In this document: positions 5,690 through 42,550 of the stretch, piece by piece
How the letters are laid out: the number at the start of each line of letters is the position of its first letter
How positions within the stretch are numbered: the first letter of the stretch is position 1
NCBI GenBank assembly: GCA_025786725.1
Contig: JAHLTZ010000018.1
Span: 124,001-188,000, forward strand
Reading direction: 5' to 3'
DNA length: 64,000 bases
Origin: Syncephalis fuscata S228
Lineage: Eukaryota; Fungi; Zoopagomycota
The notes under the pieces: generated by a model
What the model was told of the DNA's origin: nothing
The model's input: the letters and a program-made list of their open reading frames with translations, nothing else
Database searches by the model: none
Made by a program: the position numbers and the translations under genes

Positions 5690-6248
5690 GTCTTGTATGC
5701 GTAACAATATAACTGTTGTTTATTAATAAATATATTCCTAAATGCATACTATTCTAGTATTATAAGTTTAAACTTTTACAATTGATTAGCTTGCTACACA
5801 ACAATGATCTTTAATAAAATAAAATAATTACATGCACAATTTTTAAAGTATTTAAACAGCTTTTCTATTCAGAAGTTAAGGCAAATTATTTAACATTTTT
5901 ATTGTTATTGAAAAATGTAATCGAAAAGATTGTTAGTAATAAAATAAGCATTCTAACTGATTAGTTGATATGACTATGTGTAATAATTGAAAATGGTCCA
6001 ATAACTATACAATTCTTAGTATCGAAGAATTGGAAACCATAAATGCTATCATACATTCCAAGTGTTATTTTTACGCACATAGAAATAACTATATAAACTA
6101 GTATTGAACATTAGTAATAAAAATAAACTTTTCCTAAATCCCTGACCTCCCTGACTAAAATTATAAGCTTTTTTCCAATCCCTGACCATACTGTTAAAAT
6201 ATTAAATTAGTATATAACAGCTAACAAAAATATAAATTAGTAGAGCTA

Positions 6249-6894
6249 CTGTACTTTTACTTTCATATTTTTATTTACTCATTTCACTCCTTAGCACTTA
6301 AATACAATTAAACATTCACTCATAACTATAACATGTATAATCTTATATCCAACATTAATTAATTTATGTGCAATTATCAATACAATAATGTAATTAAATA
6401 TGCACATTACGGTATTAGGTGAAGTTGAAATAACATTTAATAAAATAAACGACTTTTTACACTGAATTGTTAAATATCTTTGTCGAAAATGGTCTACAAG
6501 TATAAAAAGAATAAAATAATTACGATTATTAAATATAATTATTATAATATGCAAGTGTGGTTCAAGTAAACAGAAACAAGATAGAAAAAAATAGATCACA
6601 ACACTTTGGTGTGCAGGATGACAAACAGACAACAGAAGTAATGAGGAACGATATGGAATTGCAATCATATGGCTTCTATTAATATTCAATCAATCTTTCT
6701 ACGCATAGCCAACAACAATAATAATTGACCTCAAATGTTTCAAAGAAATCAAATAGTATGTTACACTATTTATTAAATCAATTTATTAACAATATTTTAA
6801 TATGAAGTAATATAGCTATGCTGTGCATAATAATGGCATGACTTTGATTGGAACAAATTGTGCTTTAGGGACAGATGTGGGAGTCAAAGTACAG
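6249..6894 (+). mobile_element. Non-autonomous Fanzor-derived TIR element, copy A
   Basis: TA|CTGTACTTTTACTTTCATAT...ATGTGGGAGTCAAAGTACAG|TA. 6645-6773 translates GTIWNCNHMASINIQSIFLRIANNNNN*PQMFQRNQ, a decayed RuvC-III region. Left part aligns with copies B and C. Confidence 0.75.
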
Positions 6895-8565
6895 TAATTA
6901 TTCACTTTATACACGCACATTTCAATCATTGCTTTCCTTCTTTGCTCTCGCTCTCTCGCCCCTCTCCACATAGTATATTGCAGAAAGAAAAGTTTATTTT
7001 GCACTGAGTTGCTTTATAATTGCACGCTGTATTCGTGTATTTTGCACTTTTGCAGTATATGCAGAAACCGGAAATGCTGCTCAGACTAAGTTAGAGCAGT
7101 TACGAAATAACATTGGGCTGCCTAAGATAGCGTTGCAGTGTTTTATAATATTACTTATTTGCATTGGTCAGCAATGGTTAATGTAGACACAGATAGTGCT
7201 GCTTATCTGTAAGCTGCGCTGAAACTGTATTATCTGTGCCTTTAGCAGCCAATGATGGATTTTTGCATAAACATGGATATTGCTGTTTAGTTGTAGCTTA
7301 CATTAAACAGTATATTGCTTGTGCTTTTATTGGCCAGTAATGGTTTGATATGAGCATAAATGTTGGTGATTTTTTATAAAACACTAAGCGTTGGTTTGCA
7401 TTATTTATTGCTTAGGCTATGAAGAGATGTAGCGAGCCGGTACTGGCTCAAAGTAATGCTTACTTTTAGGCTGCGCTGAAAGGAACAGATTTGGCGACTG
7501 GTTACTTTGATGTTCAGGCTAGAATGTATTTTAAAAACAAAGATGGCTAGCAATGTTTGCAATGGTCAATATGATTTGTGTTATAATTCCATATTCATTA
7601 ATTTCAAACCAAACTTTGCTAATGATATTTGGAGTGTCCATGGCACGTCATTTCGATTGTTTTCAGTAAGGCCATTTTTTTCTGCATTTTACGACTTGCC
7701 ATGCGTAGTATACTGTACAGTTTAATAGGCTATACAAACGAGTTGTACTTTTTGCCATTTATAATGCGCTTTAAAACTGCTTTTAAATGATTTAGTATTA
7801 AGTGCACAAGACAGAGTTAATGACCGAGCTTTATAATATAATAGTAATTATAGTTACTTGAAAATGGGTTTATATAAAGCAAAGTAATTGCTCGTTGTCG
7901 CTGCACTTGATACTGTGCCATATATGTCAGCCTATAATGGGATGTGGCATATACGAGCACGCTATTTAATTGCAGGGGATTACTAGTAAGGTTTTTTTTT
8001 AGCGGCGGAAATTGTTTAATGCATATCATTATTGCACCCTTGGTTTCATGTGCGAGATGAGCTATCTAGGGGCCTACACTGATATGCTTTAGATGATTTT
8101 GCGCACTAAGATATTCCCCTAGCAATACCAATGTGCAGGTGGTGTTATATATTTGTTTGCGACAAGCAAAAGTTCCCAGATGTAGCTATAGGCAATCTAG
8201 CAGATTTAATGTGCCATGTAACATTGCGCATTTCTTCGTAAAGTCCTATGGTGAACCTGGATAGCAACGACACATTGTAAACAGCTATATTAACGCTACC
8301 AATCGCCGTAAAGTCGTCTGGTAAAACGCGAATGGATATTTAAAAGTCATAAATGGCTAGTATATAGATATTACAAGCCTCAGTTGCTTTTATTGCTGGT
8401 GCTTCTGGTAAGGCGCTATTTATGTTTTTAAATGGAAATTTGTATGTTAGTCAGTTAACTTTGCATCCCATCCCTCTTTTTAATACTTTTGAAATTGTAT
8501 ACATCAACTAAGCACAAAAATATAGCAAAACACAATATCAATAGCACAAACCAACAACACAAACA

Positions 8566-9879: not shown

Positions 9880-10990
9880 TACATTCTACGATTATATTAA
9901 ACTTTGGTGTCGAATAATTTTTATTCTTTTAATAATTCGCTATTATACTGAATATATATTCCTATAATAATGAGTGTTTTTTGGTGTAAATGACTTTTAT
10001 TATATTTAATTAATCTTTTAGTATACTGAATATATGTTCTATAATAATGAATGTTTTTTGTGTTAAATAATTTTTATTCATTTACTATTAATCTGTTTTA
10101 TGATGTACTGACATGTTGGGTAGATTGACTTTTATTATTTACATTCCATTTATTAATGAATTAAACTCGGCTGTTTATAAATATTGACTGACAGGCTCAC
10201 ATCTCACAATCTACGTCATCACATTTTCCTTTCTCTTTCTTCACACTTGATAACATGTATACATTGTATATACTTGTACACTCTATATATCTTATATAGA
10301 CAGTATCAGTAGTTGACCGACTACTAGTTATGTACAAACACCTTCTACACTATGTACTTGCATTGCTTTTTTGTAATCTAACCTTCATTACTCCAATCAT
10401 TGATATTGGCAGTTTTATTGACACTGTAGGTACATTTCTGGTTTGTTTTATATTATGTTGAGTATATACTGTTAAAATCTTGTTGTATGCTTTGTTTTTG
10501 CTATAGATAATTGCAGATCATTTGGTAGCAGCTTGTGCAATCTTACCAGTAACAGCACGATCTACTACTATCAAGACGATACAAGCTATTGCCAATACAG
10601 CTTGCAGTCGCAATCTATAGCAAAGCAAAAGCATATATTGATTTTGACAGCATACAGCCACTACAGTCATCGTACACAGCAGCTTTACACACACAACAGT
10701 AGTAATATTAGAAGCAATACTACTATTGCTACTGTTGTATATGCACAATCGTCAACACAATAACTGCATAGACTATAGCTTCTGTTACTTCTTTACCAAT
10801 AAAATGATATATACGTACTGGATAATAATTTACACTAATGAGTATTCGATGCCTGATGCCACTCACCACCCATCATTATGTTCAATAAAACGAATGTTTA
10901 GTTCAATTACGCAAATATGATTAATTGATGCTGTTTGACATTCAAATCACAATAAATGTGATGATTCGATTAGTTAATAATATAATTATT
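9880..10990. mobile_element. Degenerate copy of the long-TIR MITE/foldback-like family
   Basis: 10805-10990 resembles 42403-42550 and 60995-61130 (TACTGGATAAT..ATGAGTATT..CACCA..GTTCAAT). 9880-10160 holds tandem ~75-bp units resembling the other end. Confidence 0.45.
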
Positions 10991-14487: not shown

Positions 14488-14999
14488 TATACACGCCAAC
14501 AATGGGATTTCTTACAATACAGCATTAGCTAATTTGTCCATTAATAAAATTACTACATTATAACCTTTATTACTACTAATACAATTATTGCTGCCTTTGA
14601 ATGGCTATTTATATATACGTTATAGTTATTGGCATATCTTGATATTAAATTTATATGCAGAAATACTACTACTCTACCACAATACTGACTGGCTTATCTT
14701 GCCAGTAGTCGGTTATTTCGGTTAATCTAAAGCAAATCCGATACTACCTTAGCGCTTTTTAATGCTATCCTGTAGAAACTAAGGCCATAAAAGGCATTAA
14801 GATAATGGCATGAATCTAATAATTAATTGCCGAACCAAGGTCTTGGACTAGTATTAGTATATAAACAAGCTATTGAATTGTATCTGCAGCGATAGTTTAA
14901 CATCCAACACAGATGAAAACGCCAACACGACACATTACGCTTAAGTTCTGCCTTTATTGTTTGTTTTTCTTTAATCAGCTTAATTATTTTACTAGTATA

Positions 15000-15569
15000 A
15001 TGAATAGCAAAACGCTACTTACCTTGGCCGTATTGTTCGTCGTATCGTTGCCATCGACGTCCTTAGCCGTTGGATTTCCACCATCAAAGGATTTCAATCA
15101 ATGGTCACCAGATCCTATTGATGCCAGTGCCAATTATAAACTGTATCAACCGTATTTCCATACGTGTCTTGGCCAAACCAAAATGAATCCTTACTGGTAC
15201 GAGTGCTTCGCCAGTACGAAAGAGGAAACCAAGCAAATTACTTGGAAACTCGAGCCTCATGGCGATTACTATCTATTAATTAATACACTACTACACCAAT
15301 GCATCGAAAGAACTACCGATAAAGTGGTTGTACGGACATGTGACGCACAAAATGATAAGCAACTCTGGCGTTTCAATTACGAGAAAGGATATGGCTGGCA
15401 CGAAGAAAAGATTATATCAAAATACACTAATGATAAAAGCGGTCAACAGCTCGACTGTTTAACAAGCCGTGTAAAGAATGAATTCGACCAAAGTGTATTC
15501 GTGGCACCTTGTACCAACAGAATTGGTCAGACATTTGTTCGTGGCTATCAAAATACGGATGGCCTTTAA
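15000..15569 (+). CDS. Secreted ricin-B (beta-trefoil) lectin-like protein
   Basis: Signal peptide from MNSKTLL (ATG 15000). Three Cys-pair subdomains ending QITW, QLW and QTF. Confidence 0.7.
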   Translation: MNSKTLLTLAVLFVVSLPSTSLAVGFPPSKDFNQWSPDPIDASANYKLYQPYFHTCLGQTKMNPYWYECFASTKEETKQITWKLEPHGDYYLLINTLLHQCIERTTDKVVVRTCDAQNDKQLWRFNYEKGYGWHEEKIISKYTNDKSGQQLDCLTSRVKNEFDQSVFVAPCTNRIGQTFVRGYQNTDGL

Positions 15570-22388: not shown

Positions 22389-22668
22389 TGTGGATAGAGA
22401 GCAAACGAGCGCAGGATAGATCTGTCAGATGTACGATGAATAAAAGAAACAAGTGCTGACGCAACAACTATAATTTGATTCCGACGTCATAATAATTAGA
22501 CACACAAATAATTTAATATCAGCATTACTATTACTTGTATTCCGTTTACAATATATATATATCATTGTTGTTTTTACAATAAATAAAGCACAAATATGTT
22601 AGTTGTATTTTAGTATAGTGACTCACTAAACTTTTATGCAACTATGTAAAATTGATATTATGATTGAA

Positions 22669-23397
22669 TTGTACTTTGACTCTTAATTTTGAGTCTTCAA
22701 AGCAAAATTCGTTCCAATTCAGGTCGCACTGTTATGTACAACAAACATAGTTATGATGTTTATTTAACTACCTTGCAATTCGCGAGGCCAATTATTATTG
22801 CTGTTGGCCATGCATAGAAAGATTAATTGAATATTAATAGAAGCCATTGATTGCGATTTTATATTGTTCCACAGTTGTTATTGTTGTTACTACATACAGT
22901 GTAGTTTCTTGCATCTGAATGGTCCCTTCTATTCCCCAATCTTCTGCTGTTGCATTTTGGGCATATTTGCAATGTAAGATACTCGTCTATGGTGACAAAA
23001 AGGTAGGACGACTGGCATTTCTGATGTTCACCATTGTCTTGAGCATTCTTGTATCAACTTGGTAGGTACAGTTTATTTGCCGACCATTGATCAAGCAAAT
23101 GGCCTTCACCATATGCAATAATAATAGATTGAATGTCTTCACCAGGAAGATATTGTGGCGACAGTTGTAACCAAAAGATACAGCATGCTATTGAGGTTAC
23201 TTGAACAAGTGCTATGTAACATAAGAGAAATAAAGACCAGAGATTAAATAGTGTTCTTTATTAATGTTCAAATACGCATGCTATTTATATTGTTATATTC
23301 GACATTATAATATAATATATTACTGAGTAAAACAATAAGATAGCAATAGAAAAACAGAGTGAAATGAGTAAATAAAAATGTGGGAGTCACAGTACAG
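22669..23397 (-). mobile_element. Non-autonomous Fanzor-derived TIR element, copy B, with the longest nuclease remnant
   Basis: Minus-strand translation of 23160-22780 with stops and shifts: IIIAYGEG..FA*SMVGK*TVPTKLIQEC..YLFVTIDEYLTLQICPKCNSRRLGNRRD..NCGTI*NRN.MASINIQLIFL. Ends CTGTACTGTGACTCCCACAT and GAGTCAAAGTACAA. Confidence 0.82.
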
Positions 23398-23603
23398 TAG
23401 CTCCCAAATTTTAATACAATGCTGAACCAATGCTATACAAAAATTGTAAAAATTTTAAATTTTAAATAGAACAGTTTATTACAAAATGTTATTTTAAGGC
23501 AAAAATAACTAGCAATAAGAATCAGATATATATATAGCCGTATAAACAAGATCTGTCAATTGTTTTTGTATAAACTGCAGCAGCATTGGTTTCTGCTGGT
23601 TAA

Positions 23604-23792
23604 TTACATGTGCCAGCCCCAAGTGCCGGTACCATCGCCATTATCCTTGCACTCAAGTTGTCCAACGGGTGGTGTGCCAATAACGCATGGTGTACCGCTA
23701 GTGGGCGGCTTGGTAAATCCTGGAGCAGCTTCGACCGAAACGACAGCGACCAAGAGGGCAGCAGCGGCAATGATTACAGCAGAGAACTTCAT
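23604..23792 (-). CDS. Small secreted two-Cys peptide (62 aa), copy 1
   Basis: MKFSAVIIAAAALLVAVVSVEA|APGFTKPPTSGTPCVIGTPPVGQLECKDNGDGTGTWGWHM. Paralog at 28309. Confidence 0.85.
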   Translation of the reverse strand: MKFSAVIIAAAALLVAVVSVEAAPGFTKPPTSGTPCVIGTPPVGQLECKDNGDGTGTWGWHM

Positions 23793-26511: not shown

Positions 26512-26699
26512 ATGAAGTTCTCTGCTGTAATCATTGCCGCTGCTGCCCTCTTGGTCGCTGTCGTTTGGTCGAAGCTGCTCCAGGATTTACCAAGCCGCCC
26601 ACTAGCGGTACACCATGCGTTATTGGCACACCACCCGTTGGACAACTTGAGTGCAAGGATAATGGCGATGGTACCGGCACTTGGGGCTGGCACATGTAA
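26512..26699 (+). CDS. Small secreted two-Cys peptide, copy 2, with a -1 frameshift at ~26566 (pseudogene or assembly error)
   Basis: Matches copy 1 except GTCGTTTGGTC versus GTCGTTTCGGTC. Confidence 0.65.
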
Positions 26700-28308
26700 T
26701 TAACCAGCAGAAACCAATGCTGCTGCAGTTTATACAAAGACAATCGACAGTTCTTGTTTATTAATAGCCATAAGTTGCAGCTGTTTATAATAAACTATTA
26801 ATATTAACCAATATACATATTTTTGTATATAACTTGATTATAATTTATACGCATATTGTATAGACAATATTATTACAATAGAGTTCATACTTAAGTATGA
26901 ATATTAAATATAATTTGATTTGGTGTGTTGTTTAACATTTTCTACATATGTATAATATTATATATTATACCTGTTATGCGACATTCAAATTGCCAATGCA
27001 AAATCCAAATACACTGGTATATAATCGTTTTATAATCAATAATTTGGAATCGTTACGTGACTCAATGTTTTATACGTGGCTAGGCGTTATGCACAAAAAA
27101 GTATTAAATAATACCGAGTTTCTATATTGATAATAAGATTATTGACGACAAAAATGTTTAATCTTATAGTACAATATGACTACAATTGAACTATAGATAA
27201 ACGATTAAAATCGCTTTAAAATAAAATCACTAAATAATTAGTGCGATATTCTAGTTTTAAAAAATAGTATTAAATAAACTGATCAAATAACTGGATTTTA
27301 TAAGCGATAAGCATAGCAATATGTGTAGTATTACAGCTAGCATTATGACTACAAGGCCTTCAGCACTAATTCTAAAATTTCAATACTTCAAATTATTTTA
27401 CTATCAGTCAATTGAGTATGAGTATGCAATAAAATATCATGTTCAATTTGATTAGCGGTACGATCTATTGTTGGGGTATTGTTTTCTACCAGTCGGGTTA
27501 AACAGTAGTTACCTTATTTGGCATTTTCTTAGTAAGAGTGTTTTATTTAGTATGTGTGATGCTAAAAAACTACTGTTATTTCAACAAGCCAAATTAGATC
27601 AATAGATTTTTATTCACACTCATATTTAACAGATTGTGTTGACTACCATAAACGTATTTTTTTGTTTTTAGACATCGGAATCTAAATCAACTCTAGATAG
27701 TTAGATAGTGTCTATGTCTAATAGAGCAGTTAATAAAAACATAAAATTGGCACTAGTACATAAAAATTTGTATGTAGCATTGTAAGATTGCACACAATGC
27801 TAAATTGCACTTGAATGGTGCCATTTGATTAAGAAGCCAATCGATTATATTTATTGTATTAGCAACATACAATAGCTTAAAGTCACCTTAATTAATACTA
27901 ATAACGAATGTATAAATCTACTGCTTTCACACATGTAAAAAAGCCAAGATTACATATATAGTTGTGTTACACTGGTTCTCACGTCTATCCAAATTTAGTA
28001 AGCAATTATACTATCGTATAATACTCAAGACTGATTGCATTCACAACCAAACGATATTTTCTCAGCAGATCACACGTTCTTTCTAAATTAAGTATTTGCC
28101 AGTATTTAGTGTGAGTATTGTTGTATTGGCCAATGGCTAAATATTTATAGCCGATTTTACTGACGGATTACAGTATAAATATCCAGGCTAATATGCATGT
28201 CAATTAACTCATCACACACACACATCCACACAAGTATCTAGTCTGACTCGCTATCTTAATCTAATTGTATCCAACATACACCACTCAATCTACCACCAAC
28301 CAATTAAC

Positions 28309-28497
28309 ATGAAGTTCGCCACTGCCATTATTGCTGCTGCCGCTCTCTTGGTCACTGTTGTCTCGGTCGAAGCCAGGCCAGGATTCACCAAGCCACCCAC
28401 TGCTGGTTCTCCATGTGTCATTGGTTCTGCGCCCGTGGGCAATCTCGAATGCCAGGACAATGGTGACGGTACCACTACTTGGGGCTGGAGATACTAA
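28309..28497 (+). CDS. Small secreted two-Cys peptide, diverged paralog 3
   Basis: MKFATAIIAAAALLVTVVSVEA|RPGFTKPPTAGSPCVIGSAPVGNLECQDNGDGTTTWGWRY. TATAAATA at ~28174. Confidence 0.87.
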   Translation: MKFATAIIAAAALLVTVVSVEARPGFTKPPTAGSPCVIGSAPVGNLECQDNGDGTTTWGWRY

Positions 28498-36091: not shown

Positions 36092-36534
36092 AAATAATAT
36101 TATACCCAATGTCAATATGTTTGATTGTGATAGCATGGCTTCCATAATAAAGTATTCTTAAGTAGTTAAGCTAGATTGCAGTTTGATTTGATATAATTTT
36201 TGTTTGTTTAATAAAAATAGCTATGTTTCTATATTAGTTATTTACCAAGTGTAATATTACTGCTAACACTAATACCAACGACAATTTACATCGCATTGCA
36301 CTGGTAACTAACGTGGCTTTGGTCGGGCATCTACTTTACCCCCCCCCCCCAGGGCAGTAAATCTTTTTACGCAATCGATCGTAATGATTTGAATAGTTGA
36401 CGAGTTGATTGAATTAATTTGTGTTTAAATGATCATTCATAATATATATTAATAAATGTAATAGCATTACCATTTTCATAAAATAGAATAGAATCGAATG
36501 TAACAGAACATCGTGTTTGTAGTTGCTATTTTAA

Positions 36535-37038
36535 ACATTTAAATAAACAATGTGCTATACCATTTGATTTCTTTAGAGCATTTGAGGCCAATTATTATTG
36601 CTGTTGACTATGTGTAGAGAGATTGATCGAATGTTAATAGAAGTCATATAATTGCGATTCCATATCGTTCCGCCGTTGTTGCATCTACGTACAGCATGGA
36701 TTATTGCATTTGAATGGTCTCTTCTATTTTCAATATTCCACTGTTGCATTTTGGACATATTTGTGATGTAAACTCAAGATTAATATACTTATTATAAAAG
36801 TCGTTTATTAAACAGTCATTTCCTCTATAGCCAATCTGACTAAATAAATAACAATATATATATTAAAGAAACAATAAAGATAACTAGTTAATTACATTAT
36901 TTTACTGATAATTACACATAAATTAATTAATATTGGATGTAATATTATACATGTTATAGTAATGAATGGGTGCTTAATTATATTTAAAAGTGTTGAGGGA
37001 TGAAATAAATAAATAAAAATGTGGGAGTCAGAGTATAG
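36535..37038 (-). mobile_element. Non-autonomous Fanzor-derived element, copy C (right end not found)
   Basis: TSQICPKCNS/ENRRDHSNAIIHAVRRCNNGGTIWNRNYMTSINIRSI. Left end CTATACTCTGACTCCCACAT; ~150 bp align with the left part of copy A. Confidence 0.78.
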
Positions 37039-39177
37039 TAGCTTCCAAGGTATAATAGCAATCTCTATTACAATAATAATAATAATAATGCTATATATTG
37101 TTGTAATTTCTATTGGCCTTTAGCCTTTTTCTTGTCCAATCTAGTTCATGCTTAACGTGGGTATCACAACACTTTCATATGTTGCTCAACTATAGTTTAC
37201 TTCCATTGCTATAGCCGTCGTCGCCTGTGCTGTGCAGGCCACTCGACCGGCGAACGAATCAACTGCACCGTGTAACATGAGAATACAAGGCGTCCTGCTG
37301 CACCTCTATGGCTACCACTGCTTATAGAAGCATACTTTGCCTTCTTATCATCCTAATGCAGCGATGCCGTGCCTTTGAACTATTTTTTTTCTATTTTCTT
37401 TATCTTCCTTTTCTTTGTGCATTTGTGTGTGTGTGTGCACAATTTGATAAGAACAGGCCAGTTACCCATTTGAAAATATCTATTTTTACGTAAATTACAT
37501 TCATATTAATTAAACAAAATTATGATTTTATTTAATATCTCAATTATAATCAAGTAGCTTCATTGCTATGTATGGCCATTTGCAACCTGGTTGCTTATTG
37601 GCAATCACCACGAGCTATGCATGGTCAGATGGATTCTAATGCCTAACATCAAGCTAGCCAGACCATAAAAAAGCATGATTAATAAAATAATTTACATGGC
37701 TGTAAGTACACGTGGGTCGGTTGTTGCGTGACCCATGAACTAATTGCTGGAAAAACCTGTTTGATTCAACCGACAAATACCTCAACATGTCTCAGCTTTA
37801 ACGAACTTAGCAATAAAACAGCCACTCGTGCACACTTGCAATGTATATCCACCATTGCTGATTTGTCTATCGACTCCGTGCACACACCCTCACAAGTAAA
37901 AAACAGGCAAACACGCATAGCATGACTATGAATTGCACAGCCAGCCATGTTTTACTTTGTTAAAACTATTCATCATCGAGGCAAAATGTCTCACAATTTA
38001 TCCATGTGGTGTGCATGCTTGCATGTTCTAATTATATAGAGATGTTACAACATCAAGGCGCTGCTCAGCTGTCGTGCTCGGATAATTACTGGGTCGGCTG
38101 CTTGACCGTTTGTTTATTTGTTCGCTCGTTCGGCAATTTGCTTGCTCGTTCAACCATCAATCTACTTTGCCCTTTGCCTTTGTGATCCTAATAGTTTACC
38201 AATTTTATCGGTACCGTTATATCTTTGTCAAGTTTACAATTTGCATAAGCATCTTGTATTCTTCGTCTTCGCCTCCTTCCCATTATTATCCCCCTCTTCT
38301 CCTTCTCCTCCTTAATATATTTTACTTCTACATTCGTACATGCTTTCTCAATATCGGCAGTGCTAATGCGTATCTCCTTTCACACTGCCCATGAGCCAAT
38401 AATCTTTAATCCCAAACCAATACACTCATTTATCGACAACTCTTGACAGCTTCATCAGCTTCTTCTCCTCCTCTTTCCCCTCTATCGTATCTACGGTGAA
38501 ATTGTGTTTTATTTTACAATTGTTATTACGGTCGATAGCAACTCGTATAGAGTATACAATTTTGTTGTCCATTGGAAACCATTGTACACTTGGACTTGTT
38601 TCGTGTGTGTGTGCACTCAGCTGACCCGACTCGTGGCCGCTCATCCCTCGATCCAGCTAGATCTTTGCCATTGAACTTGCTTTGCTTTTCCTTTTTATCT
38701 CTATAGACCATTGGCTATCGAACGCGTGACTAGTTTTGCGTGCCATTCCGCAGTCCTTGATTTTTCTCCGCTATTGTTGTGACACGTTGCTGTGTAATTT
38801 TTTTTACAAACGGCTACGAGCCATCACTGTGTCCTACACTTGCTCTTTGTGCTAGTGTCTGCAACCTCTGCGACGTTATTTGCACTCAAAAGGTAAGAAG
38901 CAATGCGTGCCTTGAGTCCGATTGGATGTCTGCAATACCAGTGCTGACACTGAGTGCTGCACGCTAAGTTCGTTCTTAAACAGCGTTGTTCATACCATCT
39001 GCCATTGCCCATTATTATATTAACGTGCGTTAACATTTGCTCTCATTGGTTTCCTCCCTAGATTTTATATACAGGCCTTTCAGCCCAATTAGGCAACGGT
39101 GCCAATAGGCTATTCCGAATTTTATATTTCTATTCGTTTCATAGGTTTTGATTAGCGTCGACTGTATTTTTACAACA

Positions 39178-41839: not shown

Positions 41840-42550
41840 AATTACTACTGATTTAATGTAATTTGGTGTTAAATGACAGCACTTGGTAATATGCGCGTAA
41901 TTAAATTAGACATTCGTTCTAGTAAACATCATGGTGGGTGGTGAGTGACATTATCCATCAAATAGTCATTATTGTAGATTCATTAGTCTGTACACATATA
42001 TCTTCCATCCACTTATATCATTCCCATTCTATTTCGTATCATTATATATCATCCTATGACATGCAGACACATTCTATTGTTTATATATTCCCATATACTT
42101 CCTTCATTCCGTTTATTAGGCCATATACACTGTTACTTTAATACTGCTAGTCGTCACTCTATATTGCATATTTAGCACGCTATTTGTTGCTTTATTATAT
42201 TGCAATAGCGCGCTATCTATAACCGTTGTCTATTTGATTCTAAATTTATTACTACTAAATTTCGACGTAGTTTACTTATTTTATTCACTAAACTATATGT
42301 GCTTGAAACCATAGTAAATAAAGTGTAATTAGTACATGATAGAATAATAATATATATATATTAGCATGGGTATATATATATAGTAATAACATTTATTGTG
42401 ATGATGATATACGCATACTGGATAATAAATCTATGATGATGAGTATTTTAATAATTGATGTCATCTACCACCAGTCCAACATTCAATTACGTGACTATAA
42501 TTAATATAGCCCTTTAACGCCAAATCATAATAAATGATTAATAAATTACT
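41840..42550. mobile_element. MITE-like element with ~150-bp imperfect TIRs
   Basis: 41840-42005 is inversely similar to 42403-42550. Internal 42010-42110 is similar to 60225-60330. Confidence 0.6.

Follow-up and report, generated by a model that had tools for sequence, protein, structure and literature searches.

The 64,000-nucleotide stretch of Syncephalis fuscata S228 DNA analyzed here (hereafter the window) contains an element, copy B, that very probably descends from a cut-and-paste DNA transposon equipped with a Fanzor1 gene and the omega-RNA belonging to it, and is now a dead, MITE-like derivative (Table 1). Together with its relatives in the genome (family 1), copy B shows the defining features of non-autonomous transposons that have terminal inverted repeats (TIRs): it is short, possesses TIRs and a target-site duplication, is present in high copy number and has no coding capacity. 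The sequence-only reading had placed its boundaries at 22669-23397; the element was correctly located, but extends 7 bp further on each side. Its TIRs are imperfect, approximately 27 bp in length, and have GG...CC termini.

Table 1. Family-1 elements and their features in the window (an asterisk in a translation marks a stop)
Feature	Position	Strand	Basis or remark
Copy B, entire 743-bp non-autonomous element (family 1)	22662..23404	-	sharp boundaries common to ~20 genomic copies
Left ('A') TIR, starts GGAGCTACTGTAC	23378..23404	-	genome matches to outer 19 nt
Right ('B') TIR; family consensus ends GTACAGTTCAACC	22662..22688	-	alignment of ends
Decayed 8-bp target-site duplication, left copy (5/8 positions match the right one)	23405..23412	-	
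Right copy of 8-bp target-site duplication	22654..22661	-	
ATTAA motif, -11..-7 of A end; one-sided target preference, TAM-like	23411..23415	-	
Terminal hairpin, TIR core as 3' strand	22669..22707	-	fold z
Omega-RNA SL1-like hairpin, 7-bp stem, ATAACA loop	22723..22742	-	shared with 3' regions of Fanzor relatives
Fanzor1 C-terminal pseudogene remnant, ~4 frameshifts, one stop in frame	22764..23173	-	tblastn with P0007 and P0164; translations
Copy B piece 1: WLQLSPQYLPGEDIQSIIIAYGEG	23173-23102	-	six-frame translation
Copy B piece 2, past frameshift: TVPTKL	from 23072	-	six-frame translation
Copy B piece 3: FVTIDEYLTLQICPKC...NNNCGTI*NRN	22999-22850	-	six-frame translation
Copy B piece 4, past 1-bp deletion: MASINIQLIFLCMANSNNNWPRELQGS*	22847-22764	-	six-frame translation
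IDEY motif with RuvC-II glutamate (codon 22982-22984 intact)	22979..22990	-	aligned with Mucorales Fanzors
Zinc finger, first CxxC; second CxxC degenerate in copy B	22952..22963	-	translation
RuvC-III WNRD region: W to stop, D to N, then 1-bp deletion	22843..22864	-	translation
Copy A	6242..6901 (end approximate)	+	both ends present, RuvC-III part only
Copy C	36321..37045	-	zinc finger and RuvC-III part, alternative 3' subterminal module

The Fanzor remnant proposed for the minus strand of copy B is borne out by six-frame translation and tblastn searches. It corresponds to the C-terminal ~135 residues of a Fanzor protein, with fragments in the order WLQL...IIIAYG, PTKL, FVTIDEYLTLQICPKC, CGTI*NRN and MASINI...NNNWPRELQ. 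In tblastn searches against the window copy B is matched by two independent full-length Fanzor proteins, P0007 (E = 1.9e-10) and P0164 (E = 1.7e-8), and copies A and C are also recovered with independent full-length Fanzors. The RuvC-II, zinc finger and RuvC-III remnants reported earlier are all present, though the second CxxC and the WNRD motif are degenerate; RuvC-I is absent. Other copies of family 1 retain the WNRD motif, and sister copies of copy B read TSQICPKC...RCNNC..WNRD. Searches with broken copies used their separate pieces, or a reading in which X marks each break. The 64-aa piece of copy B alone scores 17 bits (E = 0.007) against PF07282, below the cut-off of 26.3 bits, and less-decayed sister copies exceed this value (e.g. 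C310:93952, 34.6 bits).

A profile built from the remnants retrieves 864 proteins; the ~30 named proteins checked among these are all from Mucorales, and carry PF07282 at their C-terminus wherever they were scanned. In the PDB the family profile best matches chains of TnpB, Fanzor and Cas12, with PpFz1, GtFz1 and SpuFz1 among them. Both lines of evidence agree on the Fanzor identity of the consensus, and no unrelated zinc-finger family scores higher. The C-terminal motif of Fanzor1 is defined as [TS][TS]xx-C4 zinc finger-X(5,50)-RD (PMC3627910); family 1 conforms to it, and it is degenerate in copy B. The RuvC-II glutamate (DEY) lies directly ahead of the zinc finger, as in Fanzor1, while the RuvC-I aspartate (DPG), found 125-275 aa upstream, is deleted in all family-1 copies examined. 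In the tree family 1 falls in a clade (support 98/90) with Rhizomucor, Mucor and Helicostylum proteins of 830-940 aa. A functional nuclease would require an intact ORF with the D-E-D triad, and copy B has the frameshifts, the stop and a D-to-N change. As judged from its sequence, family 1 is a pseudogene member of Fanzor1 and not a usable nuclease. Copy B alone lies under the Pfam cut-off and gives a weak Zn_Ribbon_TF match (E = 0.36), which might point to a fortuitous similarity or to the relic of an unrelated zinc-ribbon protein. Such readings have a negligible probability: chance is ruled out by three motifs that match full-length Fanzor1 proteins collinearly, and there is in addition similarity at the DNA level to Mucorales Fanzor genes and a downstream hairpin common to the copy B family and its Fanzor relatives.

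Two further derivatives had been recognized in the window. The one given as 6249-6894 (copy A) exists, but is slightly longer and retains the RuvC-III part alone; that given as ~36535-37038 (copy C) is likewise real, but extends further and has lost the DEY motif. The 61-aa ORF attributed to copy C is present. Copies A and C have in common a 5' region that is absent from B, and the 3' subterminal region of copy C differs from that of copy B. The high copy number anticipated for the family is upheld by genome searches with DNA, profile and TIR end. The DNA search of the 29 Mb genome gave 565 first-look candidates; in the 40 that were scored, identity is 83-86% over 610-770 bp, with similarity breaking off sharply on both sides. 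With the remnant profile 1,149 first-look candidates were obtained, each frame and fragment being counted on its own. For the outermost 19 nt of the A end the genome has 103 matches at <=1 mismatch, as against 0 for the reversed control. Some family-1 copies lie inside a larger shared repeat with flanks common on both sides (L006, L011, L013-L016, L020, L026).

The 17 full-length copies are on average 90.5% identical to their consensus and 84.5% identical to each other, with changes at 25% of CpG sites. Among them codon positions show no bias in change, the 3' end is conserved no better than the rest of the element, and no purifying selection on the coding remnant was detected. The copies decay neutrally. 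As the family consensus itself carries frameshifts, amplification took place after the gene was broken.

At a length of 8 bp, paired flanks of the elements match at 56% of positions as compared to 41% for shuffled partners (p<0.0005). This is the sole duplication length, among the lengths of 2-12 tried, that beats shuffled partners, and the signal persists on positions 3-8 alone (p=0.00035). A TA duplication of the Tc1-mariner type was considered and rejected: the TA is part of the TIR, and lengths 2-7 and 9-12 are no better than shuffled. The duplication match (~56-66%) is lower than the ~85% expected from internal divergence, which may reflect recombination between copies, with many of them being chimeric. 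Exact TTAA occurs at -10..-7 in 28 of 106 A ends genome-wide, against a background of 1-5%. An empty site was sought in the flanks of paralogous peptide genes at 26.4 and 28.2 kb, where homology stops short of the insertion point. These genes code for a ~62-aa secreted two-cysteine peptide, of which there are three versions (23604-23792, minus strand; 26512-26700 and 28305-28497, plus strand). Two of the three are nearly identical and divergent in orientation, the gene at 26.5 kb lacks 1 bp, perhaps through an error of assembly, and copy B lies ~200 bp downstream of the first.

The partner transposase envisaged earlier was not found linked to the TIR ends of the family. The genome contains remnants of MULE transposases (15 PF10551 matches), and the four strong matches are adjoined by no A end among the A ends listed. 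The 8-bp duplication and the G-starting TIRs fit MULE/MuDR elements, which produce 8-11-bp duplications. The ends would also fit Merlin, which has an IS1595-type transposase, GG ends and 8-9-bp duplications; Merlin is disfavored as a partner, as PF12762 has no match in this genome. An 8-bp duplication is typical of hAT elements and GG...CC termini are atypical of them; PF05699 and PF04937 found no hAT transposase in the genome, in searches without a positive control. The mobilizing DDE transposase is most likely to have been a MULE, with a probability that falls just short of even.

The 3' region of copy B contains two predicted hairpins. The first, with an ATAACA loop, starts 21 bases past the stop codon, and five intact relatives (in Mucor, Helicostylum and metagenomes) have the same loop, on differing but paired stems, 3' of the stop. 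Over an alignment of 15 rows 92% of the cells of this stem are paired, as compared to 25-47% in slid controls, and 16 cells show two-sided change, a count that is inflated by relatedness. Solved Fz1 omega-RNAs have in common a 7-bp stem-loop 1 (SL1), and in that of PpFz1 from Parasitella parasitica SL1 has a 6-nt loop and is followed by a GGTAAG motif (PMC11423790). The ATAACA hairpin, with its identical stem and loop lengths, resembles SL1 in predicted structure. A GTAAG motif is also found 20-23 nt past the hairpin in the intact relatives; it is absent in family 1, which in its place forms the second, TIR-core hairpin. An Rfam search gave no match. The fold z for copy B positions 22662-22750 is -3.5 versus -0.35 for the left end, and the family means are -1.9 for right ends versus +0.2 for left ends. 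Within the Syncephalis copies 85% of the SL1 cells are paired versus 90% under neutral simulation, so that SL1 is not being maintained; no selection on it was detected within Syncephalis.

The closest intact relatives of family 1 are those of Mucor circinelloides (P0288) and Helicostylum (P0290), and the ATAACA-loop hairpin provides a prediction for the omega-RNA of the intact Mucorales Fanzors in this uncharacterised clade (P0288, P0289, P0290, P0291). In Mucor circinelloides (L080:5656-10373) and Helicostylum (L081) the Fanzor gene is flanked by 126-143-bp inverted repeats. In Mucor the GTAAG lies ~70 nt inside the inverted repeat, so that any guide beginning at this motif would be internal and invariant. 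The TIR of family 1 was not found in the Mucorales relatives, which lie in other TIR elements or in none.

The suggestion that an intact Fanzor persists elsewhere in the genome found no support in searches with two profiles built from the relatives' upstream and RuvC-I regions, which recovered one real locus, C317:~732.9-735.7 kb. This gene belongs to a lineage different from family 1 and has N-terminal, RuvC-I (AVDPG) and RuvC-II segments that contain frameshifts, stops and what appear to be introns; no zinc finger or RuvC-III is recognizable in it, and it is 3'-truncated. A 140-bp 3' module is common to this gene and copy C, and ~1.4 kb upstream of the gene there is an A end (C317:737182), which suggests that the gene was part of a putative ~4.3-kb element of the same end family. 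No Fanzor-length open frame was found in 150 scored profile matches; the longest frames, two of 274 aa, were inspected and are not Fanzor genes. An intact Fanzor could lie in unassembled DNA, or could have been missed by the loose first look.

The genome yields four Fanzor1 lineages, namely families 1, 2 and 3 and the C317 gene, which are 16-35% identical to each other and each nest among different Mucorales proteins; three of the four are tied to one repeat family. Family 2 remnants point to the A end, and are often found back-to-back with a family-1 remnant, pointing to the B end, in a single ~1-kb element. In the composite elements at L017, L059, L074, L075 and L016 each remnant is directed toward a TIR with a terminal hairpin. 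Family 3 remnants stop sharply at AGTAAG without a 3' TIR (L019, L022, L029, L032, L035). This end is preceded by two small predicted hairpins in a layout like that of the PpFz1 omega-RNA, and the AGTAAG itself is akin to the GGTAAG motif of the latter (PMC11423790). Fanzor remnants, chiefly of family 3, often adjoin genes of an expanded family of membrane proteins starting MPFINYTS (L004, L019, L022, L035, L068, L070).

In the reading of copy B that we favor, the ancestral transposon would have expressed both the Fanzor and a right-end RNA with a guide from the flanking DNA (PMC10432273, PMC10530073), and their complex would most likely have cut empty sites, favoring retention of the element. 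An internal deletion would then have taken everything up to just ahead of RuvC-II, with the 3' part surviving because it adjoins the right end. A DDE transposase with an 8-bp stagger and a preference for ATT|AA would have multiplied the already broken derivative in trans. As no intact Fanzor was recovered from the assembly, the copies would now perform no such cutting. Alternatively, they might still express omega-RNAs with diverse flank guides that serve an intact Fanzor missing from the assembly, along the lines put forward for the Spizellomyces ghosts, whose omega-RNAs function with SpuFz1 (PMC10432273). The SL1-like stem and terminal hairpin occur solely at ends downstream of Fanzor remnants, and the terminal stem is paired in 97.5% of cells versus 90.6% under neutral simulation, as this proposal would have it. 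However, that stem falls partly within the TIR, on which other constraints act, SL1 pairing falls below the neutral expectation, the 3' end shows no excess conservation, and family 1 is devoid of the GTAAG scaffold end of its relatives. With the RuvC-I profile searches yielding no intact gene in the assembly, a living system of this kind appears quite improbable.

The ATTAA at the A end might, on the other hand, represent the TAM of the family-1 Fanzor, enriched as only TAM-adjacent insertions were kept. The motif is strongly one-sided and its ATT stands directly ahead of the 8-bp duplication, which is reminiscent of the ATN TAM of PpFz1 (PMC11423790). Against this, the motif is also seen at A ends downstream of family-2 Fanzors, i.e. 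on their guide side (n=6), so that it tracks end type rather than Fanzor orientation; moreover, the family amplified after its own Fanzor was broken. A TAM is therefore rather unlikely, and transposase preference is the simpler reading of the ATT|AA motif.

Syncephalis is a haustorial parasite of Mucorales. As an extension of our preferred reading, the four Fanzor lineages might have entered it separately from its Mucorales hosts, a proposition that we consider evenly balanced. In the tree family 1 groups with Rhizomucor, Mucor, Helicostylum and Benjaminiella (98/90), Rhizopus delemar is the sister of family 2 (97/88), the C317 gene clusters with Apophysomyces (100/99), and family 3 with Rhizopus and Blakeslea (92/89); monophyly of the Syncephalis sequences is rejected (p-AU 1e-44). 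The decayed copies retain 47-50% identity with the relatives nearest to them, well above the identity between families, and 0 of the ~30 named matches are Zoopagomycota proteins. However, the tree rests on 141 alignment columns, the Mucorales affiliation is read from those ~30 among 864 matches, and polyphyly would also follow from ancient paralogous lineages inherited vertically. Zoopagomycota are thinly sampled, dead copies are invisible to protein databases, and near-identity at the DNA level to any host is absent. Contamination with host DNA does not account for the elements, since they lie among Syncephalis genes on many contigs. At a distance of 6 kb, a ribosomal P0 gene has 91% identity to those of Syncephalis plumigaleata and S. 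pseudoplumigaleata, 88% to that of Thamnocephalis and ~75% to those of Mucoromycota. More tentatively, and with clearly less than an even chance, the four host-acquired lineages might have encountered one TIR vector, which took up, in opposite orientations, the 3' gene-plus-omega-RNA modules from two or more of them, yielding composite elements with an outward guide-RNA end on each side, and reached several hundred copies before the nucleases died.

Relics of dead Fanzor mini-transposons are a known kind, with a match in the Spizellomyces ghosts; ORF-less Fanzor elements have already been described (PMC10432273). Like ghost Spu-1 of Spizellomyces punctatus, family 1 comprises short TIR-bounded non-autonomous copies that exceed full elements in number, has an omega-RNA-like region at the right end and a one-sided motif outside the left end, and lacks an internal transposase. 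In contrast, Spu-1 has TA duplications rather than 8-bp ones, and 19 full-length Fz loci where no intact gene was found in Syncephalis; its ghosts are ORF-less with a working omega-RNA, while family 1 retains ~135 decayed codons in hundreds of copies with a decaying SL1, alongside three further Fanzor1 lineages (PMC10432273). PpFz1 is similarly comparable in its PDB match to the family profile (E 0.01), its mycoparasitic host that attacks Mucorales, and the resemblance of its TAM to the flank motif; family 1 differs in its loop sequence, in running into a TIR hairpin rather than a GTAAG end, in being catalytically dead and in residing in another phylum (PMC11423790). The MuDR-type elements ROr-4, PBl-3 as well as MCi-4 are also zygomycete TIR elements with Fanzor1 and no transposase, but have 9-bp duplications (PMC3627910), as opposed to the 8 bp and short (~27 bp) TIRs of family 1. 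hAT elements are the most frequent partners of Fanzor1, and non-autonomous Fanzor1 elements are associated with them (PMC10530073). Family 1 has the 8-bp duplication expected of hAT, and departs from these elements in its GG...CC termini and in the lack of a hAT model match in the genome, in searches without a positive control.

Published copy numbers reach 122 per genome for Fanzor1 (PMC10530073) and 134 for the Spizellomyces ghosts (PMC10432273). The present family places Fanzor1 in Zoopagomycota, for which no earlier report was found in the literature searched, at copy numbers above those published. It represents the end state of a Fanzor invasion that is invisible to protein annotation, and its value is evolutionary: mycoparasitism has been suggested to move Fanzors between fungi (PMC11423790), and the family offers a test case for this.

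The window contains several other repeats and genes. The 3' part of a DIRS-type retrotransposon at 103-2543 carries an RT/RNase H plus Dam methyltransferase ORF and an overlapping tyrosine recombinase ORF, and includes a 46-bp inverted repeat (2303-2348/2499-2543). A second, non-coding MITE-like repeat family, unrelated to the Fanzor family, occurs in inverted copies at 10804-10957, 41851-42470 and 59946-61236. A putative secreted 218-aa protein encoded at 14913-15569 gives a weak ricin-B-type lectin match (E 4e-4, below cut-off). Finally, a 508-bp duplication (59234-59741 and 61811-62318; 99.4% identical) covers the 3' part of a 574-aa ORF for a putative secreted protein.
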